From: Lepidodermella squamata
Taxonomy: Eukaryota > Animalia > Gastrotricha
Direction: 5' to 3'
Length of the DNA: 64,000 bases
Assembly (NCBI GenBank): GCA_047495785.1
Contig: JBLDXI010000064.1
Coordinates: 248,001-312,000 of the forward strand
The notes beneath the pieces are model-generated. The model did not search any database. It saw only the letters and a list, made by a program, of their open reading frames with translations, and had not been told where the DNA came from. Position 1 is the stretch's first letter; each line of letters begins with the position of its first letter. Positions 36,915-61,078 of the stretch are shown one piece after another. Made by a program: the position numbers and the translations under genes.

Positions 36915-37162
36915 CAGTGTGCGACTTTCAGGGGGGGATGGGGGGGATCATCCTCCCCAGCTCGGCCGGGCCAGACAGCAAAATGAGAATGTATCCCACG
37001 GTCTTGTTAATTTTGGAAGGTTCTGGGGCGTGTTTTAGTGAAAAATCTCCAAAATTTTCTCGCTTCGCTCGGTTATTAGCAGAAATGACTCGTCATTTTG
37101 GCAAAAACAGCAAACAAATTTTTTCCATCCCCGGGAGTTCGGGGATCGAAGATCGCACCCTG
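36915..37162 (-). mobile_element. hAT-like MITE
   Basis: TIR cagtgtgcga / tcgcaccctg; 8-bp TSD gaatcatc at 36907-36914 and 37163-37170. Confidence 0.88.
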
Positions 37163-37170
37163 GAATCATC

Positions 37171-38027
37171 TCCTCGGGACGTTATCATGGAATCCATCCA
37201 GCCATCGTTATCTTTCGCATCGACCGCAGCGTTTCGATCTAGTAACAGTCGATCAACTGCGATTTGCCCTTTCAAAAAAGCTCTCATCAATGCTGTAAAG
37301 CCATCGTTATCTTTCGCCTCAGTTGAAGTGTTACGGTCCAGCAACAGTTGAACTACTGCGACTTGCCCTTTCGGAACAGCACTCATCAACGCTGTTAAGC
37401 CATCGTTATCTTTCGCTTCAATTGAAGCGTTACGGTCCAGCAACAGCCGTACCACTTCGATTCGCCCCGCCGCAACTGCATAGATCAACGCGGTCCAGCC
37501 ATCGTTATCTTTCGCATCGACCGCAGCGTTTCGATCTAGCAACAGTCTAACTAATGCGACTTGCCCGCTATTCGCTGCATACATCAACCCTGTCACGCCA
37601 TCGTTAACTTTGGCCTGGATAGAAGCGTTCCGGTCCAGTAGCAGTTGTGTTGCTGCGACTTCCCCTGTCGTAATTGCATGCATCAACGGCGTGAAGCTCT
37701 TGTTATCGTTTGCCTCGTTGGCAGCCTTGCGATTCAACAAGAGTCGTAAAGCTTCGATTCGCCTATTCATGGCCGCATGCATCAACGCCGTCCAGCCCTT
37801 GATATCCCTAGCCTCTATATTAGCATTTCGATTTTTCTACTTCGGTTTTTCCAGCATTGACAGGAAACATCAACGCCGTAGAGCCTAACTTATTGTATGC
37901 CTCGATAGAAGCGTTCTCGAATATCACCGGCAAAACAGCTCTAGATTTCGCATTTTGTCAAAACAAAACAGCCGTGGCCGATCTTTTGAGGTCGCGAGGA
38001 GCAAGCCGAGCAATATCAACATGTTGA
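37171..38027. pseudogene. Orphan ankyrin fragment: about 6-7 internal repeats on minus (about 37190-37920) abutting a C-cap on plus (about 37920-38027)
   Basis: LLLDRNA.(I/V).AKDNDG repeats on minus with a frameshift near 37830; plus strand GKTALDFAFCQNKTAVADLLRSRGASRAISTC*. Confidence 0.8.
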
Positions 38028-38813
38028 AATCGCGTACTACCTTCACTTTACTTCCGATCTAGTGATTACACCCAAAATCGCCATCTCAATTCGTATTATT
38101 GCCATTCTACCATTCAAAACGCTCCATCAATTTTAATTCATCAATTTTAATAAAACAAACAATCGTTTTCAAAATAATTAGGAATTGGGTCTTTTACATA
38201 GTAAATGATGTAGTGCTAACTGATTAGCAAAGTCCGATCAATACTGAAAATTCGCATCTCCGATGCTTCGATAAAACCGCCAAAACGTTCAGGAACTGCG
38301 TTTGAAAAGCTCGGGCTGTTTTAGGAATGAGACTCAGCAGTACTCGAACGCAAAACGAAAATAATGTTTATTCTCCTTCGCTTTCCGGGCACAATTTACT
38401 CAACCTACAGTAACCTTCAGCGATGTCTTGATGGGGTCTGTAATCGTGTTAGGTATCTCTAATTCATTTTACCTTCTGGATTATGAAGAAAGCGGTTATA
38501 TGTTAACCACTTTCTGTTAAATTTTATACGTTCCTAATAGGTAGAGTAGCGAGAACTGGGTGCCATCTTGGATCCAGGGATGAAAATATCTGTTAACCTG
38601 TTATTCTGCAAAAATGAAGAAGAATGTTGCGGCCTTTTTAATTTTCGCGGACGATTTCACCAAATTAAGAATTTCATTGCAATCTATTAGCGTAAAAGAT
38701 CAATTCAGTCTCAAGAAAGACGAGAAAACGAAAAATCGCTTGAAACTACAGAAGAATACTATCAAGGTGTGCCAAGGATCTTATTCATATCGAAATATCT
38801 GCAGTCAGCCCTC

Positions 38814-41800
38814 TTAGTAGACTAGAATTTCAGAGAATGACATAGGCATGGCGCCTGATTTTTCGATGCGAATGTATCGCCCCAGCAGCGGAGGCGTGCA
38901 GTACATCGTCAGCGATTGGCCGATCACCAAATTCGGGAAGCGATAGCCCCGATAGATATCGCAAATAGGACTAAGCGCTGCACCGGCCGAGCCATCGCCG
39001 ACTCGGGAGAGGACTTCGTAACTCACCGCACTGATTAAATCAACAGTAATATACGAAACCGTAGGACTTATTTTCGATACGTAAATGGACTGGCCAATGT
39101 CGATTAGAAACCAAAAATCAGTGCTGTACCCCCCGCCGCTGCCTGATGGGTAAAATGAGCCATCACTCATGTTGGCGTTGAGCGAAGCCGGAAAGGTCGA
39201 TGTGACTTTCTTGAACAGAGCATAATTCGTCCCAGTTTCAGTGCTAGCTTCAACTTTACAAATTAAAATGATGGCCTCGCGAGAAATAGATATCACGTTG
39301 ACGTAACGGCCCGATACGGGTGGGAAACAAGGCACGGACACTCTAGCGTCATAAGGAACGTCAGGGTCGCCAACATTGCAGTTCGTCAATGCTGCATCAG
39401 CGTACCAAGTCGGGACGCTGTTGGAAACAGCGACTCTCATGTCTGTAATGGCGTATTCAACATCGGCGTAGGTGCAGCCCTTGAAGCTAAACCGTCCTAT
39501 CGGCTGTAGTGTGTAATCGTCAACGTACAGCCGAACGGCGAATGCAACTAGAGCTGGTTTAAGGTAGTTGACGAAAGGCTCAGAATTCGGGCCACTGGAA
39601 GGTCCATCGAAAATTCTAATTCTCGACCCATTGTTCCCGGTGTAAGCTACCCATTTGCTACTGTCGCCCTTAAGCCGAGATGCCAGGTGATACTTTTCAA
39701 TCCAGGCCGCCAGGGTAGCGCTGGATTGAACCGCGACAATGTTGATGATTTTCAGCTCCGTGAATGTTATCTGAAAATACGGCTGACGATCTGTGGCCAG
39801 CGGGATCCAGTCTGAGTTGCCGATGTCATTCCTGCTCAAATCGCTAGGAGTTGTTGCACTCGATGCAGTTTCTACGGATTCGCTATCGTAAAGCTCAATG
39901 TTGCAAAATTGATCTAAAGAGTTTCGAAACATTATCACGGCCTAATTATAAGTAATTTTATAATCTTACGCGCGCAGCCTCGAACTCGCCATTTCAAACA
40001 GATTTGGCCGCTCCACGATTCAGGATGGAATCTGAGATGACGGGCTATGATGTGCGGCCTTATGAAGCTCCACTGAGTCGATGTTGAATCGTTGTTTGCA
40101 ACGAAAATCTATCAAACATTTATTTCATTTTTCGAGCAAGAAATATGTCGGGTTACTTTTGTTGACGATAGGCCGATGGCTCGATTGTAAAATGTTTTGA
40201 AGGTAACGTTATTAGTGCTGTAGGACAATCGATAGGTTCGGACGAAGCAGTTGTTCACCGAATCGCCAGATGTCGCAATCGATGTAACGATTTTCTGCTC
40301 GCCAAAGTCCAACGTTAGGAATTCCGTGTTAGACAAGGTTGCTGGAGTCCAAGCGCAGGCCATGGAGCCACGAACATCATCCGATCCAAGGCAAACGCCG
40401 TAGGGCGGGGAAGCAGAGGAGTAGTTTGAACTGTAAGTCCAGGCCGATGTGGATGACAGGTCGGACTCGCAAACGTGGCCCTCCACTGGAAGTGCAATAA
40501 TTTCGATATCCTCACTACAACTATTATACTTTTTTATCGCTTACATGTATTCGGCGTAGGAATTTGGTTAGCAAGCTCCATGGCTAGGAGTGAATCTGCT
40601 GGGCTTTGGTAGATTGCTAGCCAAGTCATCAGCCCTGTAAAGTACGCGCTGCTCGAGACATCCTAGATATGATGAATTATGTGTTGATGCTTGAAAATGC
40701 GCCTATCAAAATTTTTGATATTATACATGCTCATAAATACTAGAAGCGGCTCTAGGTATATCTTATGATACTGCTTTTTATTCTAGCAAACAAGAGCCCG
40801 GAAAATCTGAGAATCAAATACAAATTGTATATTTCCCAATTAATTGTTCACGACCAAGTCGAACTTATGAAAATGTACAGCGTATACAATTACTATGACA
40901 GAAGACATGATTAGCTCCCTATCAGTTAGTGTTGCCTATGACCTTTCGCCAGCCCTCATTCCGAGGTTGAACATACCAGGTCAGGTTTCCCTACAACTTT
41001 AGCCTATTTCTAGCGTGAATTTTCGGAAAATATTACGATGTTGAAAAATCAGACCTACCCTTCCTATGAAGAGGCTATTCGTGTCACCAGGAATACAGTC
41101 GCCGAAGCTTTGCGTTGCCCCAGCCACGCCGTCACGGTAGCCAGTGATGCGATGAGCGCCTGCTGTGAAATCAACGTTCAACAGCAGGTGCTGCCAGCGA
41201 TTAACAGCCGCGTTGCCTATATCGTTCGCAGTCTGCACTCCATTGCAACTCACAGTGTAGGATATCGACATGTCCGCCGAGTTGTAGAGCAGCTGGAGAA
41301 GAGGAGATGTACCCATGGCCAGCTGGAATATAGGCTGGCTGCCAGCTGTGAAATTTGGAAACATCATTGCATGGATTGCCACGGTATAGGATGGCAGAGG
41401 TGCAGATCGGTTGAAGCCGACCTTGTAGCTACTGAGGTATGAAGCCACGCTCAGTGAATTAGCGGCGGAAGGTGAGAATCGAAACACCTCCGTGTCACCC
41501 GTCGACCAAGGGAAGGCAGGTCCTCGAAGGGACGACCCAGCCGCAGTCAGCACATCACTTGTACCATCCACTGTAGACAGGCCGTTGTTGTAGTCGAAGG
41601 GTGTTAACAGGACGGCTTTCATTGTGCTGGTTAGCGGGCATCGCCTCGAAGAATGGGCGAATCTTCGCGTGAACACAACTGCGTTATACACTTGCACACA
41701 CGCATAGCTCGTCGGCTGGCTGTTGGCGCCTCCGATTCTGAAAAACGTCGCATCAGTTTGTATTCCAATACCGCCACAGCGATTTGACCACGAAGCAACG

Positions 41801-44800
41801 AATTCGCCCTCTTGGATCAGATAGGCGGTAGCCGTCCCTAATCTGTATTGAAATCCAACATAGTTCCACTGATTCAGCAACAGTTTTATCGGCGAAGTTA
41901 GCGTGAAAGGCGACGTTGCACCTTTGCAAAGAGCGACAAGTTGAAGGTAGCCGGTCGAGGATGCCCTCAATCCCACTGCAAAAGCTGTTGAATTCAACGC
42001 ATCCGTCCAGCCCATCAACAATCCGCCAAAACTAGCCGGTTTGAAATGAAACAGGAGAGTGACTGACCGGAGATAGACGGTGAAGCGGCTATTATCAGAG
42101 TTTACCCAGAGATAATCCATTTGAGAATTGAGCTTCAGCGCGCTAAATTAATAGAAAAAAACAACTGCTATTTTTTCGACGCAAGTTTTGAATTACGTGT
42201 TATTGTAGCTGAGCACATTGTCGCACGTCGGGTTTCCAACCGCTTTGAAAGCACTGCTCGGTGTGATAAGATCAGCTAGGTTGCAGGCTAACGGATACAG
42301 CACAGCAGGCGTCGGGGCTGCAAATTGTGATTAAATTTGAGCCAAGTTGCCTTTGAGCAAGAACTCACGAGTCCAAGGAGCTTGGGCACTTTGATCAATC
42401 TCAGCGTTGTCCAAAGCCCGCTTGTATATCTGGATGTGCGATAGCCTCCCGGTCCACGCGCCTCCCACCACGAGGTATGCATTCACTTTGACTGCAGTCG
42501 ATGTAAAGCAGCTGACCGCATAGATCCCGCGCATGATGCGATCGATGAAAGCACGAGCAATACCCGCGCGGCAGTCGAATGTCACAGCGGTGTGAACCCA
42601 GCGATTTTTATCGATGATAACATAACCCTGGGTTTTAGGGAAACTCACCGAGTCGTTGCATGCCCGAGATTGATCCACTAGAAATGTCCCGGTATCGTTA
42701 ATCCAAATTCGCATACACATACTAGGGAAAAGGGAAATATCTTGTCAATAGACAAGCGTGGGATACTGTGAATTCATCACCAAATTGAATTCATTGAATT
42801 CAGTACCAAAAATCATTGAATTTTGTACCAAGTTTTTCCAATCGGTTCAATCGAAGTCACAAATTTAAAGACCCAGAGTCTAACCCGAACCCTAACCCTA
42901 ACCCTAACCCTAGCCCTAACCTTAACAAGCTAAATAACGGAATAAACTCGTTAGGTATTGAATTAAATGAAATTTGGTGCCGCATAAAGATGTTCTCAAC
43001 AAGAGTCAATGCTGTGACTTACTTTCCTTGAGTTGAGCTGACCAAATTGAGAATGCCGCTCGTGTGCCAAACCCATGCTGAAAATGTCCAGCCATTATTT
43101 TTGTCAGCAGCCAAATAATCCATCGGTAGAAACATTTTGCCTGAGCCTGACCACGCGAGGGCTGACAGAGCTCGCCCAGTAACGCCTAAGCCGAATGTCA
43201 GCCCGGTTGAGTAGACGCCGTTGTTGCCATTGCCGCTCAGATCGTCAGCTCGGCGCAAGATGTCCAGAGGCCAGTAGCCATCTGGGACGAGTGTGAAGGC
43301 CGGGTCGAGTTGCGGGGTAGTAATTTCTACAGACGTGATAGTTTTCGTCTCACCCAAATCAATTGTAACGTAAGACCGCTGGAAAGGATCGCCACCACCT
43401 GATCGCAGCTTCGTGCAGTTTGTGATACTTCTCTCTCGGATGACACGGTCGCTAGTCAAAACTGAGGCACCAGGCAGCCCAAGCAAGGCATCAGTCGCTA
43501 GGTCATACGCTTTGGCTATAGGAGCTTTGAAGGCAATATTCGATGTATACCTTGGGATAGTTTTACAGCCAAGCAGCTCGATTTTGTAACAAGGCTTCGC
43601 GCCAGAGAATGAAATCGGCTCAATCCTGAAGTATTGCGCAACAATCGGCCTCGGGAAGACAACTGTTGCGATCTTCATCGCGTCGATGTTACCCGTTAAA
43701 GCAGCTTGGCCATTATTGTCCTGCAGCTCAGCCCAGTTATCGCCCGAACTTGCCTTGTAGCCTAAACTAAAGACTTGGACCCAAGAATTAAGCATGGCAC
43801 AGCCCTGAATTTGAACAGCAGTGACCACGGTCTGTTTTCTCAAGTCGATTACCAATGGCATGCTGTTAGCATACGCAGCCAGGCCCCAATTCAGCCGTGA
43901 GTAATACGGCTTTGCTACTGCAACAATTTCAGTCGAAATTTGAGAATCTTCAATTTCATTAGTTTCCATGCCTAGAGGCTCGAAGCAATTAGCTGGAGAG
44001 CCCTTAACTGCCACTTTAGCTTTGCTTTGAACACTCGTTCTATTCTCGAATGTATTTGTAAATCTGACATGCTTTGTAAGAACTGGTCGGAAAGGCGTGA
44101 AAATCGTAGTTTTGCCGCTGATAGGATTCCAGAATCTGTTCTCACCGTGGCCATTATCAATCGATTGAAAGGCCAAACCATCAAAACTCCACTCTAATTT
44201 CACCTTTAGTAAACAGTCGAACCTGCAGTAAAACTGGAATTCCGTCATCCAAACGAAGCGTTGGAGATCGATTTTAAACCAAGTACCAACGGGAGGATTG
44301 TTGGCGAACCCGAAGTAATGCGGATGATTTTCGTAGAGATGACCAAGCGGCGGCTTCTCGTCGCTATAAGCAGAGCTCGAAGAGTAACCCAAGTCAGTTA
44401 CGTAAGAATTGTCAAAGTCAACAATTTCACCGCCTGAAACTTGCAGCAACAAGCTAGGCGCGGTCCACGCTGATTTGAGTATTGCATCCCATGTCGCTGT
44501 TACCGCACAAGAAGATTTCGTCGAACACTGGCGCGATTTCTTCATCAGACCCTGCGATGCCACTGAGAACGAAGTTGCGTCTGCATTTGCTAGGACTTGG
44601 GCAATTGCCGAGCCAGGCAAGTCAAAGCTCCATAGGTCGCAGGTTTGGTTAGTCGCCGTGAATTGACCAGACCTACAGAGCTCGTTCGAATTACACGAAG
44701 TCATGCAGTTTACGGCTGATTGAACTGAGCTTAGATTTCCAACGAGGTGGATCGAGAGGTTGTAGCCGGCCTTAACTGGGCCGAAGGCCATTCCGGGGTA

Positions 44801-44866
44801 GATGTTGTAGTGATAACCTCCCGCAGCAACGCAGTGGCATAGCGCGGCCGTTAGAAGCAAAATCAT
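38814..44866 (-). CDS. Large secreted mosaic protein (about 1695 aa): PAN/apple-like, discoidin (F5/8 type C) x2, LamG/pentraxin-like domains, discoidin x2, C-terminal galactose-binding/fucolectin-like domain
   Basis: 8 exons (43023-44866, 42369-42721, 42197-42317, 41059-42142, 40545-40662, 40157-40485, 39970-40108, 38814-39913) total 5088 nt in frame. Motifs C..SC....CRS.QF....C.L; PLGME..I.DSQI; IDL..VTAVQIQG; WVHTAVTFD; WFLIDIG; GRYIRI..FSEILVY. No TM segment seen. Confidence 0.88.
42881..42921. repeat. Short interstitial (CCCTAA)n/(TTAGGG)n tract inside an intronic repeat element
   Basis: taacccgaaccctaaccctaaccctaaccctagccctaacc. Its flank (ttgaattcagtacc..cattgaattttgtaccaa) recurs near 19755-19795. 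Confidence 0.75.
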
Positions 44867-47536: not shown

Positions 47537-50500
47537 TCAACATATAAATTTTGCCCGACTAGCTCCTCGTGAAATCAGCAAATATGCCACATTAGTCTTT
47601 TTCAGGCATATAGCGTAATCTAGAGCATTATAGCCTTTCGCATTTATAATATTCACGTTTGCACCTCTATCCAGCAGCAGCCGAGCAACATCGGCCCACC
47701 CCTGCATAGCCGCATGTATCAACGCCGTTTGGCCTTCATTACTCATGGCATCGATGGCTGCTTTGCGATCGAGCAACAGTCCAACCACTTCGACTTGCCC
47801 ATCCCGAGCCGCATATATCAAAGCTGTCCAGCCATCATAATCTTTAGCCTCGATGGAGGCGTGGCGATCCAAAAGCAGTCGAACGGTATCGACATGCCCA
47901 TTTGCAGCCGTCTCCATCAACGCCGTCGTGCCATTTATGGTATTGACGTCAATGGAGGCGTTGCGATCGAGCAGCAGTCGTACAGCCTCGACCTGGCCAT
48001 ACATGGCCGCATAAATCAACGCCCTGTACCCATCATCATCTGTAGCCTCGATGTCAGCTTTGCGATCCAGCAACAGCCTAACTATTTCAACGTTTCCTTG
48101 CTGGGCGGCGTACATAAGAGCGGTTTTGCCAATGTTATCTTTGGCTTCCTTAGCTGCTTTGCGATCCAATAGCAGTCGCACTGCATCGACATGATTAAAC
48201 GCAGCCGCATATATCAAAACTGTCAAGCCATTAATATCTTTAGCCTCGATAGAGGCGTGGCGATCCAAAAGCAGTCGAACTACTTCGATATGTCCATGCC
48301 ATGCCGCAATCATCAATGCCGTCGCGCTATATTTATCCTTGGCCTCAATGGAAGCGTTGCGATCTAGTAGCAGTCGTACAGCCTCGACCTGGCCATACAT
48401 GGCCGCATAAATCAACGCAGTACAGCCATTTTTTTCTTTGGCCTCCACGTTTGCTTTGCGATCTAGCAACAGTCGAACTACTTCGACTTGCCCATCCCGA
48501 GCCGCATATATCAAAGCTGTCCAGCCATCATCATCTTTAGCCTCAATGGAAGCGTTGCGATCGAGCAGCAGTCGTACAGCCTCAACCTTTCCGAAAATAG
48601 CCGCTTCCAGCAATGCTGTCGTGCCATTGTTATTTTTTGCCTCGATGGCAGCTTTGCGATCTAACAAGATCCGCACAGCTTCAACATGTCCCTTCGATGC
48701 CGCCCGCGTTAACGCCGTCCAACCATCGTTATTCTTGGCTTCGATAGTTGCTTTGCGATCGAGCAACAGCCGAACCACTTCCATTTTTCCCCTCGAAGCA
48801 GCAAGAATAAGCGCCGTGTTGCCAACGTTATCTGTTTCGTCGATGGAAGCGTTGCGATCCAATAACAGTCGCACAGCTTCAACATGCCCAAACAACGCCG
48901 TCCACATCAACGCCGTCCAGCCGTTGTTGTCCTTTGCATCGACGGCAGCATTACGATCCAGTAAAAGACGCACTACTTCGATTTCTCCTTCCACAACAGC
49001 AAAAGTCAGTGCTGTGTAGCCATTAGCATCACTAGCCTCGATGGAAGCGTTGCGATCGAGTAGCAGTCGTACAGCCTCGACCTGGCCCAATTTTGCCGCA
49101 AACATCAATGCCGTCGTGCCATTGTTATTTTTTGCCTCGATGTCAGCTTTGCGATCCAGCAGCAGCCTCATTATTTCAACGTTTCCTTTAAGTGCGGCGT
49201 AAATCAGCGCAGTCACGCCAGTGTTACTCCTGGCTTCAATAGCTGCTTTGCGATTCAATAATAGTCGCACGCTTTCGATTTTCTCTTGTAAAGCCGCTAG
49301 AATTAACGCTGTTGAACCATCGTTATCCCTGGCCTCGATAGCAGCGTTCCGATCCAATAACAGTCGGACAACTTCGATTCGCCCACTACGTGCTACGTGC
49401 ATCAATGCCGTCCGGCCTTCTTTGTCTTTGGCCTCGATGGCGGCCTTGCGATCTAACAACAGTCGAATTGTATCGACTGGCGCGTTTAAAGCCCCAAACA
49501 TCAAAGCCGTCATGCCCATGTTGTTCTTGGCCTCTAAATCAGCGTTCCGATCCAGCAACGTCCGCACTGCTTCGTTTTTCCCAGAGACAGTCGCATACAT
49601 CAAAGGTGTGGTGCCACTAATATGATCCTTAGCCTCTATCTGAGCGTTGCGATCCAATAGCAGTCGTAAAGCTTTAACCTGCCCCCTCGTTGTCGCAATA
49701 ATCAATGCTGTCAAGCCCCATTCATTCGTGGCCTCGATGGCAGCGTGGCGATCCAGTAACAGCCGAATGGCTTCGACCTGCCCAGCCCCAGCCGCAACCA
49801 TCAACGCCGTCAAGCCATCGTTATTTTTTGTCTCGATCGAAGCGTTCCGATCTAAAAAGAAGCGAACTACTTCGATTTGCCCATTGCCAGCCGCATACAT
49901 CAACGCCGTCGCGCCATTGCTATCCTTGGCCTCAATCGAAACATTCCGATCTAAAAACAAGCGAGCTACTTCGACCCGTCCATAACTAGCCGCAAACATT
50001 AACGCCGTCGTGCCATCGATATTCATTGCCTCGATCGAAGCATTACGGTCCATCAAGAGTCGAGCTGCTTCGACATCCCCATTAAAAGCCGCTGCCATCA
50101 ACGGCGTCCTGCCATAGCTACCCTCCTGGACATTCACATTAGCACCGCGGTCGAGAAACAGCCGAGCAATTTCCACTCGCTGTCCCGGTTTCTGATTGAT
50201 ACACGCCCAAATACTATGAAGCAGGGTGCTATTCTCTGTAATCCAAGTATCGCAGGTATATACATTGGGATTGCGCCAGTTCGGGTCGAACTTGCCGCCA
50301 GTGGATTCGTCGATCTCCTCAACAAGTTGCCGCACCTGCTCTACGTCACCTGTCTCAACTGTTACATTCCACAGTTGTTCGTACACTTCAGGGATCTAAA
50401 GAAAGATTGATTCCTCGAACTATTGCATTGCATTGTGAAACTCACAGGTCTTTGCTTTGCCGACACGCAAGAACCAGGCTGGGACCACGTGAAGTTCGAG

Positions 50501-53500
50501 AGGCACGAAATGGAAGCATTTCCTCGAATCTTAAAATCTTGGTCGCATGATATGCTTCGAACAGCCCCGACGCTCGATAGACCAGGCGCTATGGCGCCGT
50601 TTTTTATCGTCTGAACAGCAACGCAGCCTTTAGGGCACGCATTACAGATGGCGAGGGGAATAAAGCATTGACTTACCTGTACGGTTACACCTTCCAGTTA
50701 TCCCTGGACGGAATGGAGGAAAGCAAGAGGCGATTGATACAGATGCGGAGTACGTGAAACCAGGGTCGCATTTAACGCTCACCACCCCACCTCTCTCTAT
50801 CACCGTTCCAGGCCTTACAACTGAGCCAGTATCTTCCGAAGTTTCTGGGTCCACACGGGTTACAATTCCCGCTGTTATGTTTGGTATGACACAGGACTGC
50901 TGCTGAGTACTCAACTGGCTTCGAACTTCTATGTTCTCCGAAATCCAATCGAGAACCTTACAGACTCTGCTGTAGATGCCGGGGGTTTGCCCATTACATG
51001 TCTCATTGGCTTTAGAAATGATGCCAAGCAGGTATGTTTTTCTCGACATCAGGCACATAAGAGGGCCCCCAGAATCTCCAAAGCAAGCATTGCTGCCGTC
51101 AGCGGCTAAACACATTTTCGAATCGGTCATATTGACTGGATTCGAGCGGCCTCGGGAATACTCCATTGAACAATTTCGGTACGATCGAACTTGAAGATTG
51201 AGCTTCCTCGGGATCTCTGATATTCTGGCTGCAAAACATTAATGCTCTGTAACGATGTGCAACATAGCTAGCCCGTAAGCACCAGATAGAGAAAACTATG
51301 TTTTAGTTGCTGATTAGCCGATTTTCAAATTTTCTCTCTCGGATGAAAATCACCTGTAAACCTTGTTTGTTCTTTCTAGTTAAAGCGCTGATCTCTCCAT
51401 TCCATTTTTCATTTTTCATTTTCATATTCCAAGCCATCTTCATTGCGTCTTTATCATCTGCTCACGGAATATCTGTTTTTCATTGTGAAATTCCATTTTT
51501 CTAATCTCAAATTAATTATCACCCCTCTGAAATTATTTATGCCTTGGTCCTAAAATCAGTCGGCCACTGTGTTGACCATTGTTCGGATTAAAATCAGACC
51601 GGCGGATTTTATGAGCGAGCCGCCGGTCTGATTTGTCTTAACTCGAACGAAGGTCAACTCAGTAGCCGTCAGATGGCAGAGCAAAAATTAAGACAACCCA
51701 AAAAGAGACAGGACAAAAAAATAGGTTAAGGAGAAAATGGCGAAAATAGAGCATGCTCCAACAAATTCCTGGCTTAGGTAAAGGTAAAAGGCCACGTTGA
51801 AAATAGCAAAAAATTAACTAAAATGGCTTGGCTAATGGAAAAGAGCTCAATATTGAATCGAGACAATAATTCGTTCTAATTTGATTTGAGCAATTCACCC
51901 CGTTTTCTACGCAGAGATTCAGAATAATTCCAGAATTCAAGAGATTAGAACAGGTTTGAGGGAAAGACACCGTTCTCATTCATTTTAGATTAATTTGTTC
52001 AACGTGATCAAAATTTTTGGATTTGCCAATTGCCAATTTTCGATCAGCTGGTGCTTTAATTTGAAATCAAACGGCAATGAACGGGCAATGCCGTGAATAT
52101 CGAATTGCAGGCCGGAAAGAGTAATAGGGTTAGATCCCTCTATAAATTTTAGGAGCAGTTTGATGGCAACTGAAATTTATCGCCTAAAACTGTATTTAAA
52201 CAAAAAACGGAATTGTTTTTACACTAGATAATATAGAGCTAGGTCTGACAATCTACATCACCTGAAAGCTAAATAATTACTGAAAATACCTGAAATTGAG
52301 CCGTTCTTGCCACCTTCGGTTAAAAAGAATCTATTCAAACCTCCAAAACTCAGCTTAAAACATGCTAGTAGCTTTCGAATCAAAATTCTGAAAAATGAAG
52401 CCCGACTAATGTTTACGAAGTCCATGTGTCTTAGTCCAAAGGAAAAAAAAATCAGTCTCTTTTCCGTCGTGACGCGGATTACTACTAGGACAAGTCGCAG
52501 ATGGGTGATAATAAGTATATTGCCTTATTTGTAATTTTAGGCAATATACTAAGGCAATATATTATAAATAAGAAGAATTTCACAATGAAAAAGTGAATTT
52601 TCCGCTAGCAGATGAAAAAGACCCATTGTTGGCTGCATCAAATTTCGAACTAAGTTGATTACCGACTCGAAGTTTAAGAACAAGGCGTTCTCGAATGGGA
52701 TCAGAGAATTCCCTACACCCCCATACAACGACCTACTTCAGAGATAATATAGCAAATAAAAAATTGTCATGCCCAAACAATTTCGGAAAATCAAAATAAA
52801 ACATTTACGGGACACATTTTTATCTACGGGAAGCGAAAATTCTCAGCACGGATAAACCTATTTTTCAAATTTTCAAAAAATTACCAACCACGGCAGATGA
52901 ATGGCGATTTTGCGAAAAACCAAAATTATAGCCCTTTTTGGCGGCTTTTAGACTATTGTCCGTATTTTTGGAATTAATTAAAATCATAATTCGCGGATGG
53001 GGGTTAGGTTGCCTAGAAAGTAATCGCGTGCCGCACTCTTTGCAAATTAAGCTCGAATATATTCACTATGGGAAGATTGTTAGTTCCCTATCTCCTATCT
53101 GTTACAGTATTTTCTATGGCTATTAGTTATTACCCAATTCCTGTATACGAGAATGACCTACTGCGAGAAAAATGACCCCAGCCAACTGCGACCGCAGAGT
53201 CGCATCCGTCAATTGAATCCGCAGTGAACGAGTTGGACCGACACATTGAAGTCGCTTCAGGTAAGCAAATCGGCCGTATCTGCTGTGTGAATCTTGAAAC
53301 TGGGCTCGTCAACCGTAAGAGAGCGAAATCAAAGTCGTAGAAATTCTGACTTCCGTTGTAAAGCGGGTGAACTAAAGGCGGCAGAGTCACAAGAGATTCG
53401 AAAGATGGTGTTTCCGACCGAATACTGATATTATGTCGACCTAGAGACGCTTTTATCCTGTTCAAACATAGAATAGAATATAAGTTAGAAGGGGATTAAT

Positions 53501-53850
53501 AATTTAGAAAACCCACAAAACGGGCGTATTTCTGTTTTTCCAAACGCAATGAGCAGCTGTTATCAGCCATTGCCGCGAAATAAGAGACGCTCCGCAATAC
53601 GACGCCGATGTTTCGTAATAAATCTCCAGTGAGACCTTAGAAAAGCATCATTTTTCAGTTCAATTGTATATATGGAAATCATTGCATTTAGGCAAACCAG
53701 CCATGGGTATTCATTTGGTTCTGTCGGGTGACTGCCTGGATCGCTTGATTTCGGCATTGTAGTAGCGATTACAGTACCGCATCCGAGATCTTGAGCGATG
53801 ACAACGCTGGAAATCAGCTCAAGGAAGGCCATAGCTTTAGGAAGATGCAT
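47537..53850 (-). CDS. Secreted serine protease-CCP-CCP-ankyrin repeat fusion, long form (about 1386 aa, 25 internal ankyrin repeats plus caps)
   Basis: Exons 53698-53850, 53517-53635, 53162-53457, 50677-51228, 50446-50627, 47537-50395 total 4161 nt in frame, all GT-AG. Triad TAAHC/DFALL/GDSGGP. 50-nt phase-0 intron joins ..CVSAKQRP to IPEVYEQLW. Confidence 0.9.
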
Positions 53851-55796: not shown

Positions 55797-58700
55797 ATGC
55801 CCATTCTCAAAGCTATCACCTTGCTTGAGCTGATTTCTTGCGTTGCCATTGCTCAAGAATGCGGTACTGTAATCTCTACCTCAACGGCGAAATCCACAGG
55901 CCCGGGCAGTCATCCAGCAGAGGCACATGAATATCCATGGCTGGTTTGTAATTTTGAATCTGTTATTTTTTTTTATATAACCGAAAAAGATGTTTCTTGA
56001 AGGTCTTCCTTGAAATTTATCACAGCCGCGACACATCGGCCGCATATTGCGGCGCTTCTCTCATTTCGAGGCAATGGCTGATTACAGCTGCTCATTGCGT
56101 CTGGAATGCTGGAGAGACTCCAATTTTGTAAGATTTTTTGTTTTATTCTCTTATCAGATATGGCGAAACTTTTTTATTTACAGAATAAAAGCTATGATTG
56201 GGCGTCATAACATCAGTGTTCAATCAGAAAATGCCTCTCGCGAGTCTCTCGTGGTTCTGCCGCCTTTGCTTCATCCGCGATACAGTGGGAGTCGGAATTT
56301 CTACGACTTTGATTTCGCTCTCTTACGGTTAAGGAGCCCAGTTCCAAGATTCACACAGCAGATACGACCGATTTGTTTACCTGACGCGACTCTAATGTGT
56401 CGGTCCAACTCGTTCACTGCGGATTCAATTGACGGATGTGATTCGGCGGTCGCAGTTGGCTGGGGTCATTTTGCTCACAGTAGGTCATTATCTTAAACAG
56501 GAAATAATAGCTCGGTAATCGCTTGGATTTTTTTACTGTTCACGTAATTTGAATGTATTTTGTCTCTTCTATATGAAGATATGATCCTACGGATCTACGT
56601 CATTTCAGAAAATTAAAATCATTTTTATTTTAGCGATATTTCAGTACTCAACGCGTCATTTCAGAATCGTAAAACTCAGAAAAATGAATTTTGTAAATAT
56701 TTTGAATAACTCCGAAACTCAGAAAACTCAGAATTTATTTGAATTTTACTTCGAAAACTCCAAAATCTCCGAATATTATTTTACAAAATTATTCTAATAG
56801 CCTAGGACAACTTTTATAGGTCCAATCCGCCACTAGATCGGGATGACCTCAGACCCGTTCCATTTTGTGTTCGCGTGCCGAATAAAGTTATCCGGTCGTC
56901 GCCCGGGCCACTGCCATGTCGCACGTCATCCCCGTCCTGGTCAAGAGGCGGAAGATCATCATAGTCGTAGCGAGGGAAAATTGTCGAATTAAGAGGGACA
57001 TTTTGGTGATTTTCAACTGTGAGAATGAGAGAATTAGCAACTTCCATACATTTGCATCTGTTTATGGCACACCAGACATTTGTGTGAGCCTTCCAAACCC
57101 TCAAAAAATTCGGTGTTGACAAACTGAGGCAAGAATTTGACAAACTAGGCACGTGCCTCGTGTGCCCATGCGTTGAAACGGCCCTCGAAACCCCCCGATG
57201 CATCTCGAAGTAAATGATCGCAGCCCTCGTCGCAACTTTACTCGCCCGATTCTCCTTGGCCGACTACGACCGAAATTCTGGCTTCCGAAATCGGCCAGCG
57301 GCCCATCAGATTCAGAAGTGGAGACAGAGTTACGAGAAGGTGATGAAGCCCCATCAGATGACGCCTCGTGTTCTGAAATGACGCTCAGAATGATCATTAA
57401 TTAATTTTCCGAAGTGTCGTGTGCTGAATTTTCGCGAAATTTCAGATCAAAATTTCTGAAATGTCGTTACACGGATCCTAGCTCTCAAACCGGGGAAGGA
57501 ACGGCGAAGAATGACAATTCAGCTACGTAGCCTAGTGGGTAATTCTCAACTCCGGTCTGTCTAATTCTTATAGTTTCAAGTAACTCAGTGCCTCAATTTA
57601 AATGACATTAGGTTTCTAGAGGCGCGATGCATATGCTCCCATGTTTTATAGCCCTTTTAATTAGCTTCATCGTTGTTTCCCTTCAGCTAGGCTCTCTGAG
57701 ATCCCGAGGAAGCTAGACCTTCAAGCTCGATCGTACCGAAACTGCTCAATGGAGTATTCCCAAGGCCGATTGGATCCGGTCAACATCACCGACTCGAAGA
57801 TGTGTTTCGCTGCCGATAAAAGCGACGTTTGCTTTGGAGATTCCGGTGGCCCTCTCATGTGTATGAAATCAAGGCAGACTTACCTGCTAGGCATTATTTC
57901 GAATGGAGATGATTCATGCAAAGGATACACTCCTGGCATCTACAGCAGAGTCTGCATGGTTCTCGATTGGATTTCGGAAAACACTGATGTTCGAAGCCAG
58001 ACGAGCACTCCCGATCAGTCTTGTACCGTACCGAATATCACCGCGGGATTTGTAACTCGAGTGGACCCAGAAACTTCGGAAGATTCTAATGAAGTTCTAA
58101 GACCTGGAACAATCGTGGAAAGTGGTGAAACTGTCGGCATCAAATGCAACCCTGGTTTCTCGTACTCCGAGTCCATCTCGACTGCATCGTGCTTGCCTCC
58201 ATTCCTTCCGGGGATTAATGGAAGGTGTAACCGTACAAGTAAGCAAATGCAGCGTTTTCTTTAATATATGACGCCATTTTTGCCTCCAAGGCTGTGGTGC
58301 CGTTCGGACCGTTCAAAACGGCTACGTAGCGCCTGGTCTATCGGGAGTTGGAGCCACCAGGAACATATCATGCAAACAACATTTTGTGATTCGCGGAAGT
58401 GCTTCCATACTGTGCCTCTCGAACTTCACGTGGTCGCAGCCTGGTTCCTGCGTGCCGGCAAAGCGAAGACCTGTCAGTTTTCTACAAAGATTCACTTCAT
58501 TTTTTCAAACAGTTTCGTCTTACCCAATTCTTGTTTGGCACAGAAACAAAAAACAAAATGTCATTTATTACTTTTATTTACCTAAATTCACTTTTGTGGA
58601 ACAAAATTTGGCTCCGTTCCCTACCGTTCCCTACCAGTGCCGGATTTTCCATTAGGCAAACAAGGCAATTGCCTTAGGGCCCCGCGATTTTCGGGCCCTT

Positions 58701-61078
58701 CAAATCCAAAGGGGGACCCTTATGCCCCAAGGGCCCCCATATTTTTTTACTCTAGTTTGAAAATTCCACCTTTTGATTTGTGAAAACGGCTTCAACGGTC
58801 AATTTTTCGGCCTTTGGACGGAGCTTTTGGATAACAATTTTGAAAAAATGTGCTCGCTTCGCTCGCACTCGTCTACTTTTTCCAGTCCGGTCTAAACTCT
58901 CCGAACAAACCTTACAAATCTGTAAGGCTGTATGCTCTAAAAATCTGGCACTATTGTGTGCAGGAAGCATTCGCATTATAAAACGAATCAATCAAACCCT
59001 GAACTTAACGTAATGTTGCTATTGGTATAAGAGTTCTAAATCACTATATTTTTCCTGCATGTTATCAATGTGAAAACTAAAAATTTTAAGTTATCAGCAA
59101 AAATTCAAGATAAAAGGTCTTTTCAAGTAAAAGGTTGGGGAAACTAGTATTTTGTCCATTTTAAAGTGAGTTTGGCGGGCTTTTTTCATTGAAAAAATCC
59201 CGAAATTTGCTCGCTTCGCTCGAATTAATTGGTTCAAATTACATGTAATCTCCACAAAAGCCGCGGCAAAGTTTTCAGCTAAAAAAGTGGTCCAATTGGG
59301 TCTAGCTCTCAGGTGGTATATTCAGTCATTCAACTGTACCTAACAACTGTTTGAATTTAAAATCAAAACAGTGCTCCGGGTACGGGGGGTAAGGGGGGAA
59401 AACGACCCCCCCCCCCCTTGGCGTTCGAAAGTTTCTGAAAAACGTAAGGGTCCTCCCTGTTGATTTGCAAATTTTGGGCTCAAAATAGCTCCATTTACCC
59501 CCCTCAGAGCTGGACCTAGTCGGATCACTGAATCAAAATCTAAATTTAATCGGAAAACCAGGTAATATGTACATAATCTTATGGTGTCAGTGCCGGATAT
59601 TCCCAGCTTGAAATTCCTCGGGGCCCTAGGAAATTGGATATTTGTTAATTATATTTTGCCGTGGCTTTGGTTGAGATTAGCACATGTAATTTGAACCAAT
59701 TAATAAAAAGTATTTAATACCAATCAATAAGGGAAGCGAGCAAATTTTGGGCTTTTTCAATAAAAATAGCCCCAAACCCTCTTAAAAATATCCAAAGTGC
59801 TCATTTGCTTTGTCTTTTTCTTGAATTTCGGCTGTCTACTTCCAAATTTCGGTTTTCACATTGGTAAAATGCAGGAAAATAACATGATTTAACTCTTCAA
59901 ATTGTTTCAAAATTGTGGTCCAAACGCATTAGAGTCCAATAACTATGTCCTCCTTACGGCACTGTAATCAGTTGTCAATTGTGCTATGCCTTCATCTTTA
60001 GGTTCGTGAAGTGTACGAGCAATTGTGGAATGTATCATCATTGACGGGCGATGTGGCGCAGGTGCGGCGACTCGTCGCGGAGATCGACGAATCCACTGGC
60101 GGCAAGTTCGACCCGAACTGGCGCAACCCTAACGTTTCTTACTGCGATACTTGGACTACACAGAATGGCACCCTGCTTCATAGCGTTTGGCTGTGTTCAA
60201 ATCGAAAATCGGACCAACGACTGGAAATTGTTCGGCTGTTGCTTGACCGCGGGGCTGATGTGAATGCCAAGGAGGGTGCCGCTGGCAAGACGGTGTTGAT
60301 GGCAGCGGCAATTATTGGGGATTCAGATTCAGCTCGCCTGCTGCTGGATCGCAGAGCTGACATTGAGGCTACAGATGACACTGGCTACACGGCGTTGATT
60401 CATGCGGCAAAGGAAGTGCAAGTGGAAGCAGTACGGCTATTACTCGATCGCAACGCTTCAATCGATGCCGGTGATATCGAAGGCTTCACGGCATTGATGG
60501 CAGCGGCTAATAATGACAAATTCGAAGTGGTACGGCTGTTACTGGATCGCAATGCAGCCATCAATGCCACGGATGTAAATGGCTTGACAGCGTTGATGAA
60601 TGTGGCTAAGAACCGGCAAGTCGAAACTGTTCGACTATTACTAAGTTTCAGGCCTGACATTGAGGCGAAGGATGCAGATGGCGCGACGGCGCTTTTACAT
60701 GCCTCTAGTAGAGGGAATGTCGAAATTATGCGCGTTTTGCTTGATCGGAACGCTTCTATCGAAGCTCGGAATAACAAAGGCGAGACAGGGTTAATGAGCG
60801 CGTCTGTGGTTGGAAATGTTGCCGCTGTAAAACTGTTGCTGGATCGCAACGCTTCCATTGAGGCCAAGGATAACAATGGCGAAACAGCGCTGAGCTATGC
60901 GGTTTTGTTCGACCGCGTCGAAGCCATTCGACTGTTACTAGATAGAGGAGCTAATATGAATGTCATAAATATCTATGGCTTGTCGGTTCTAGATACTGCA
61001 GTTTGTGATGAAAGAATAGCTTCGGCCAATCTGCTGAGGTCGCGAGGAGCAATTCGAACAAAGTCGCCATGTCGTTAG
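55797..61078 (+). CDS. Secreted serine protease-CCP-CCP-ankyrin repeat fusion, short form (about 792 aa, 7 internal repeats plus caps)
   Basis: Exons 55797-55943, 56003-56127, 56184-56479, 57687-58238, 58291-58472, 60002-61078 total 2379 nt in frame. Same intron phases and exon 3-5 lengths as the minus copy; ..CVPAKRRP joins VREVYEQLW. Confidence 0.88.
59369..59530. mobile_element. hAT-like MITE in intron 5
   Basis: TIR cagtgctccg / cggatcactg; 8-bp TSD aatcaaaa. Confidence 0.85.

Follow-up and report, generated by a model that had tools for sequence, protein, structure and literature searches.

In the 3' half of a long ankyrin exon of the gastrotrich Lepidodermella squamata, blocks of DNA recur as a patchwork that we read, with a probability of about 0.68, as the eroded record of several old germline duplications and deletions of blocks by unequal crossover or slippage. 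The exon lies in a window of 64,000 nt (assembly GCA_047495785.1, contig JBLDXI010000064.1, positions 248,001 to 312,000 of the forward strand), which is the whole stretch of DNA that was analysed, and all positions given here are counted from its first letter. This is an ordinary and well-known mode of growth of repeat proteins, seen here in a new instance and in an unusual gene. Taken alone the finding matters little: ordinary recombination would have grown and rearranged a long ankyrin array, long ago.

The exon is the terminal one of its gene and encodes a family-specific N-cap followed by 27 ankyrin units, which we number W1 to W27 (the repeat number of the preliminary description plus one). 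Its frame is open over 949 codons, and every unit is 33 aa long with the exception of W7, which has 34. We call it an ankyrin array on the ground that its repeated 33-aa units score above the cut-offs of the Pfam ankyrin models (Ank_2 8e-197, Ank 4.8e-184, 22 stretches). The Sushi exon directly upstream is joined to it in frame through an AG acceptor that was read from the sequence, and the exons further upstream carry parts of a trypsin (Table 1). The contig comes from an animal with small introns and does not resemble human DNA. These Pfam searches were made exon by exon rather than on a joined protein model. The product is presumably a secreted protein with an unusual trypsin-Sushi-ankyrin architecture, for which a literature search returned no relevant match.

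Table 1. Features of the ankyrin exon and of the exons upstream of it, in window coordinates. Matches and offsets compare the two copies of a tract; offsets are in ankyrin units.
Feature	Position	Strand	Content or basis	Match between copies; offset
Terminal exon: family-specific N-cap and ankyrin units W1-W27	47537..50395	-	ORF/translation, Pfam	
Stop codon of the ankyrin exon	47537-47539	-		
GT..AG intron between Sushi exon and ankyrin exon, 50 nt	50396-50445	-	boundaries read from sequence	
Sushi/CCP exon directly upstream of the ankyrin exon	50446..50627	-	Pfam Sushi 1.6e-7	
Intron between trypsin/CCP-like exon and Sushi exon, 49 nt	50628-50676	-		
Exon with trypsin C-terminal part (GDSGGP) and CCP-like module	50677..51166	-	Pfam Trypsin 6e-14	
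More trypsin exons and signal-like start	53130-53850		exon-by-exon search	
Peptide GWTALIYAARDGQVEVV, found twice	48476-48526; 47783-47833			
Peptide ALIYAAMYGQVEAVRLLLDRNASI, found twice	48347-48418; 47951-48022			
Peptide GNVEI.RLLLDRKADIEA, found twice	49133-49186; 48044-48097			
Peptide IEAKNNNGTTAL, found twice	49106-49141; 48611-48646			
Tract T1 copy A	48452..48562	-	end of W17 to W18 codon 28	104/111 nt (94%); 7
Tract T1 copy B	47759..47869	-	end of W24 to W25 codon 28	
Tract T2 copy A	48203..48418	-	W19 codon 7 to W21 codon 12	181/216 nt (84%), patchy similarity; 4
Tract T2 copy B	47807..48022	-	W23 codon 7 to W25 codon 12	
Tract T3 copy A	49033..49156	-	W11 tail and W12	109/124 nt (88%); 5
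Tract T3 copy B	48538-48661		W16 tail and W17	
Tract T4 copy A	49041..49188	-	W11 codon 14 to W12 codon 30	124/148 nt (84%); 11
Tract T4 copy B	47952-48099		W22-W23	
Tract T5, both copies	49035-49087 vs 48342-48394			51/53 nt (96%); 7
Hybrid unit W25	47747..47845	-	nt 11-54 P19-like, nt 58-99 P20-like (tail 33/33)	
Hybrid unit W18	48440..48538	-	P19/P20-type head and middle as in W25, A-type tail	
Unit W4, extra relative to L002	49829..49927	-	middle P4-like, tail P3-like	

The preliminary description had reported four peptides that recur in this array, as near-identical blocks placed out of order. All four recurrences are present in the translation of the exon; the coordinates first given for them were off by 8-17 nt for the GWTALIYAARDGQVEVV pair and essentially exact for the other three. 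At the DNA level, a self dot-plot of the exon yields five ungapped tracts of 53-216 nt with 84-96% identity (T1 to T5), and two more of 46-49 nt that are borderline. The best tract scores (83, 76, 64, 52 and 45) were set against a null of 500 shuffles of codons within alignment columns, which keeps the framework conservation and the codon usage of each column. The null maximum has a mean of 29 and a 99th percentile of 41, and the five tracts exceed all or nearly all of the 500 shuffles, so that the blocks recur more than chance would have it. The recurrence thus stands, but the term near-identical does not, given the identity of the tracts and a longest exact repeat within the exon of 52 nt. 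Ordinary pairs of W units share 55-75% of their DNA sequence (typically 64%), and the most similar pair of whole units, W18/W25, is 91% identical. The tracts measure 0.5-2.2 units, which is far less than their offsets of 2-11 units, and they are spread over at least six different diagonals.

These blocks are nevertheless not free of order, contrary to what had been claimed at first. Tandem Repeats Finder (TRF) detects a period of 396 nt, i.e. 4 units, over 47807-48574 (1.9 copies, 77% matches). Types of units were defined from a maximum-likelihood tree of the units of the exon and of its closest paralogue (P units, locus L002), together with segment-wise best matches. Type A holds W11, W22, P10 and P16 (tree support 99/97), and type B holds W12, W17, W19, W23, P11-13 and P17, with W23 and P17 grouped at 100/98. 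Type C is made of W20, W24 and P18 (94/89), and type D/D' of P19, P20, W15, the tail of W14, the head of W21, W18 and W25 (97/85 for W15 with P20). Read with these types, W11-W25 becomes (A B ? D D') (? B D) (B C D) (A B C D/D'). This is an anchor path of four passes along P16-P20, the successive copies being W11-15, W16-18, W19-21 and W22-25. We have here a higher-order tandem repeat, with a period of more than one unit and with a constant succession of types A, B, C and D from copy to copy (W13 and W16 being untyped). The pairs that had seemed out of order (18/25, 19/23, 11/22 and 12/17 in W numbering) join units of type D, B, A and B, respectively, from different copies, and the A-B-C-D order is kept inside each copy of 4-5 units. 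The pattern is that of periodic block duplication with loss of units, rather than of free shuffling.

The copies do not all tell the same history. According to the B units, copies 3 and 4 are the closest (W19-W23 85% vs W17-W23 73%), whereas the D units bring copies 2 and 4 together (W18-W25 91% vs W21-W25 74%). As the closest copies are not the same for the two types, several events are needed, with at least one exchange between copies. The case that the preliminary description had named as fatal to its own proposal, a repeat phylogeny fitting simple block duplication, is therefore not the one encountered, since a single tree of the block copies does not fit. Its statement that the pattern is not one tandem duplication also survives, through this conflict and through the number of diagonals occupied by the tracts. 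Two particular single duplications were tried and rejected. For one of 7 units (W12-18 vs W19-25), the end units alone are similar (82% and 91%) and the inner five are at the background level of 61-71%; for one of 10 units after W15, merely one 46-nt tract lies on the corresponding diagonal. As a side observation on the unit types, W13 and W16 have no clear one, which makes the four-pass reading partly interpretive, and the p-value of the anchor path is inflated as the thirds of one unit are not independent.

The paralogue gives a measure of what has changed. L002 lies on another contig (ORF 1202-3550, minus strand, 782 aa, 22 units P1-P22) and has an overall identity of 75% with the product of the W exon; it is the single close paralogue that served as reference, and the comparison is made within the genome of one species. 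There is a one-to-one correspondence of W1-W3 and W5-W11 with P1-P10, of W22-W24 with P16-P18 (82-93% identical) and of W26-W27 with P21-P22. Most of the W/P pairs are well supported by the unit tree, including the one-to-one pairing of W2-W10 with P2-P9, and W11 groups with P16 instead of its positional partner P10 (99/84). Between these two regions, the ten units W12-W21 stand opposite the five units P11-P15 with no collinear match, and the best relatives of P19-tail and P20 are found in the middle of the W array, in the tail of W14 (32/33 nt) and in W15 (89%). W1-W11 and W22-W27 have thus stayed collinear with the paralogue, and the middle of the array has turned over. The number of units also differs, with 27 in the W exon vs 22 in L002.

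The age of the events can be approached through synonymous divergence (dS, Nei-Gojobori), with 14-53 synonymous sites per estimate. T1 has a dS of 0.165, T3 of 0.26, T4 of 0.37 and T5 of 0.22, and the dS along T2 is uneven (0.16 in its first part, 0.66 in the middle and 0.06 in the last). Collinear units of the W exon and L002 diverge by 0.23, and unrelated background units by a pS of 0.60, which is near saturation. As the dS of the tracts is close to 0.23, the events are about as old as the split from L002, or somewhat younger. The recurrent gene conversion or unequal crossover proposed in the preliminary description is in this sense half right: there were multiple events, as the conflict between block copies and the hybrid units indicate, but they recur only on an evolutionary timescale (dS 0.06-0.37). 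With tracts as old as these, its hint of somatic variants finds no support.

Several units appear to be composite. W25 looks as if two adjacent ancestral units had been fused (P19/P20 runs test, p=0.0005), and W18 is also significant as a hybrid (p=0.0026). In W23, nt 31-70 resemble W19, and the flanks of this segment resemble P17 (p=0.0085). W4, the extra unit, gives an offset-1 dot-plot tract of 105/130 nt and looks like an a4/a3-type hybrid, as expected from a one-unit unequal crossover, with a hybrid runs test that is not significant. The head of W24 is 91% identical to that of P18, and this, along with the uneven dS of T2, suggests that the head of W20 is of different origin and that its tail alone is of type C, which makes W20 probably a hybrid too. 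The parents in these tests were chosen from the unit tree or from best matches, so they are selected comparisons; after Bonferroni correction over the 14 runs tests, W25, W18 and W20 are the only ones to pass, the parent of W20 (W4) having been picked post hoc. Fused units (W25, W18) and a change in the number of units relative to the paralogue are the two signs that we would look for in unequal crossover, and the exon carries both.

In the history that we favor, the germline would have seen several duplications and deletions, each affecting a block of between one and about five ankyrin units of 99 bp. These would most likely have arisen when units of the exon, which has no introns, were misaligned and underwent unequal crossover or slipped during replication. 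Four to five types of units (A-B-C-D-D') would have made up an ancestral super-repeat, which would still be intact as P16-P20 in L002 and would be present four times here, some of its copies having lost units. The hybrid units (W25, W18, W4 and probably W20) would then sit at the expected junctions, and one more exchange between copies, if not several, would be needed as well, by crossover or through a short tract of conversion. What the data show is the tracts with their significance and ages, the lack of collinearity and two of the hybrid units; the mechanism, the order of the events and the direction of the transfers are what we infer from this pattern.

Formal tests of recombination do not refine this picture. 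The PHI test, run on 25 units or on 45 units including those of L002, with three window sizes and also on third codon positions alone, gave p=0.06-0.8, the lowest value being that of the smallest window. A global triplet max-chi-square scan with permutation of site order was not significant either (observed 31 vs a null mean of 30). Triplets selected from the tree or from matches are significant, but this is a post hoc result which, given the global scan, is not to be taken at face value. A check of the GENECONV/RDP type, which had been suggested at the outset, is thus significant for the selected triplets and not significant once corrected. As the corrected tests are not significant, gene conversion and crossover are not separable event by event. 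The power of such tests is low on units of 99 nt with a near-saturated background.

Among the other explanations, we take most seriously short-tract gene conversion between non-adjacent units, at a constant number of units and on a much older array, unlikely as we hold it to be. It would suit the small length of the tracts (46-216 nt, well below their offsets), the heterogeneous dS along the offset-4 diagonal (T2), the W19-like segment lodged in W23 and the clustering of W11 with P16. However, neither PHI nor the corrected triplet scan is significant; the 27 vs 22 units, with W4 and W25 resembling products of gain and fusion, indicate that length-changing events did occur, and the fresh events seen in paralogues are adjacent tandem blocks and not distant patches. 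Very improbable, by comparison, is convergence alone, in which selection for the same framework and binding residues, combined with codon bias, would have produced the similarity. Framework tails are indeed very conserved from one paralogue to the other (33/33 nt in W5/P4, W20/P18 and W25/P20), and their dN/dS is 0.20. Yet the tracts beat a shuffle null that keeps the codon composition of each column, and they span the most variable positions (e.g. AARDGQ, AAMYGQ) with a dS of 0.06-0.26 vs a background pS of 0.60. Convergence is therefore largely refuted by the identity at synonymous sites.

An artefact of assembly, with repeats mis-ordered or collapsed, is a worry in any tandemly repetitive region that is judged from an assembly rather than from reads. 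We give it slightly less credit still, as the longest exact repeat is short and the typical identity between units low, the 949-codon frame is open, the exon is present in one copy in the 121 Mb and 151 contigs of the assembly, and its flanks are collinear with L002. Hardly any credit at all goes to ongoing programmed or somatic shuffling of the kind known for lamprey variable lymphocyte receptors (VLRs), which shares with this exon a modular layout and a variable binding face, and nothing more. Even the youngest tract has a dS of about 0.06, the mean identity between units is low, and genome-wide DNA searches found no near-identical donor cassettes such as a VLR-like assembly would draw on. 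In those searches, made with W16-W21 and W22-W25, the best match in another gene reached 86% and was the collinear paralogue; no tract above 86% was seen that would speak for exchange of repeats between genes.

Duplication of blocks of units, which the reading that we prefer puts down to unequal crossover or slippage, can also be seen at work in other members of the family. The family has more than 40 loci, on contigs C4, C64, C10, C73, C81, C85, C36 and C42. In its other members a count of motifs recognises 12-25 units, which is too few relative to the direct delimiting used for the W exon and L002. Adjacent 2-unit blocks with 99-100% identity occur at loci L004 and L005, the second of which has an additional adjacent duplicate of a single unit, and L003 holds a 337-nt tract at a 4-unit offset. 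Several members are far more homogeneous than the W exon. In the fresh duplications of these sister genes the copies are in tandem, and the length of the tract equals its offset. With their fresh or long duplications, these three loci demonstrate that block duplication is active in the family. They favor it as the primary process and place the W exon at the old and eroded end of the range found in the family.

Duplication, unequal crossing-over and gene conversion are described as the drivers of the evolution of repeat arrays (Persi, Wolf and Koonin 2016, PMC5120217). The W exon resembles this general model in its 4-unit period, its hybrid junction units and the difference in unit number between paralogues, and also in its conserved terminal units around a variable middle and in the fresh adjacent duplications of its sister genes; it differs from it in nothing of kind. 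A more specific comparison is with the WD40, ANK and TPR domains of fungal NLR/HNWD proteins, in which unequal crossover and conversion lead to fused and reordered units, and whose repeats are highly conserved internally, shuffled and subject to concerted evolution (Chevanne et al. 2010, PMC2873952; Dyrka et al. 2014, PMC4986451). Both systems have fused units, units in a new order, variability at binding-face positions and a large gene family. The fungal class of high internal conservation is, however, defined by repeats that are more than 85% identical in aa over 100 aa or more (Dyrka et al. 2014, PMC4986451), whereas the W units have a mean of 57% at the protein level and 64% in DNA, with a single top pair at 0.85 and no pair above that value. 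The fungal repeats are moreover exchanged between genes, for which the genome-wide DNA searches with W16-W21 and W22-W25 gave no sign here, and the W gene has trypsin and Sushi modules in place of a NOD (nucleotide-binding) domain.

It is conceivable, if rather doubtful, that the trypsin-Sushi-ankyrin family, the W gene being one of its old members, generates new extracellular binding surfaces in the germline by continually duplicating, losing and fusing blocks of ankyrin units. If that were true, animals would have in it an equivalent of the NLR repeat system of fungi, with the 99-100% identical 2-unit duplications of the sister genes at its active end and the W exon at its eroded end. The W exon itself gives no evidence for a diversity mechanism that is selected, fast or programmed. 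What it provides is a calibration for the family: the order and number of units are labile over evolutionary time, with a conserved framework and binding-face positions that are free to vary.

The module can also be compared with designed ankyrin repeat proteins (DARPins); Binz et al. are cited by Chevanne et al. 2010 (PMC2873952) for the random assembly of ankyrin units. The W exon, in contrast to DARPins, belongs to a natural gene, whose binding is putative. It has in common with them a near-consensus framework with variation at similar positions, a likeness that bears on the module and not on the shuffling. Variation between the units is concentrated at positions 0-3, 5, 10, 13, 14 and 16, which correspond approximately to the randomised positions of DARPin libraries. 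Between units of the paralogues, dN/dS is 1.07 (0.73-1.66) at the positions of the face and 0.30 at all others; the value of the face is no evidence of positive selection, since the positions had been picked for their variability. The units differ in that each brings its own binding-face residues, so that with every event both the order and the number of the putative binding modules were altered.

Codons 22-32 of the ankyrin unit encode its framework tail (RLLLDR.A.IEA), and in three units of the window gene (W5, W20 and W25) this stretch is identical at 33/33 nucleotides to that of units P4, P18 and P20 of L002, the closest paralogue, in contrast with the 75% overall identity of the two paralogues. 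The dS between these genes is 0.19 in the unit tails against 0.26 in the heads. Such tail identity might come from synonymous-site constraint or from small exchanges.

In two sister genes, L004 and L005, neighbouring blocks of two ankyrin units match each other at 99-100% identity. The mean DNA identity between their units is about 80%, so that their arrays are much more uniform than that of the window gene. The family members L010 and L009, which lie 31 kb apart, gave the same scores, coordinates and internal repeat patterns, as would be expected if a whole gene had been copied very recently by segmental duplication. The window ankyrin exon has 44 DNA matches, and since over 20 of them fall within G000:C4:1.42-2.08 Mb, there is a large family cluster in one 0.7-Mb stretch of this contig.

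The second gene of this kind, head-to-head with the window gene, has a signal-like start and the trypsin motif EYPWLV (55797-56131, plus strand), and its ankyrin ORF of 355 aa (60011-61078, plus strand) falls far short of the 27-unit array of the window gene.

Location of the family loci and of the features flanking the window gene
Feature	Location	Strand
Sister gene L004	G000:C81:32959-34509	
Sister gene L005	G000:C10:361343-363012	
Family member L010	G000:C64:608036-609655	
Family member L009	G000:C64:639096-640715	
Second gene of the same kind, head-to-head with the window gene	window 55797-61078	+
F5/8 type C + PAN ORF	window 43019-44866	-
Laminin_G_3 ORF	window 40999-42120	-
F5/8 type C ORF	window 38814-39938	-
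Further ankyrin ORF	window 37093-37785	-

The plus strand of the ankyrin exon holds long antisense ORFs (47714-49985; the longest 193 aa), which seem to arise from the repetitive arrangement of codons and not to be genes. Just downstream of the window gene, a series of ORFs with extracellular-type domains occupies 37093-44866 on the minus strand.
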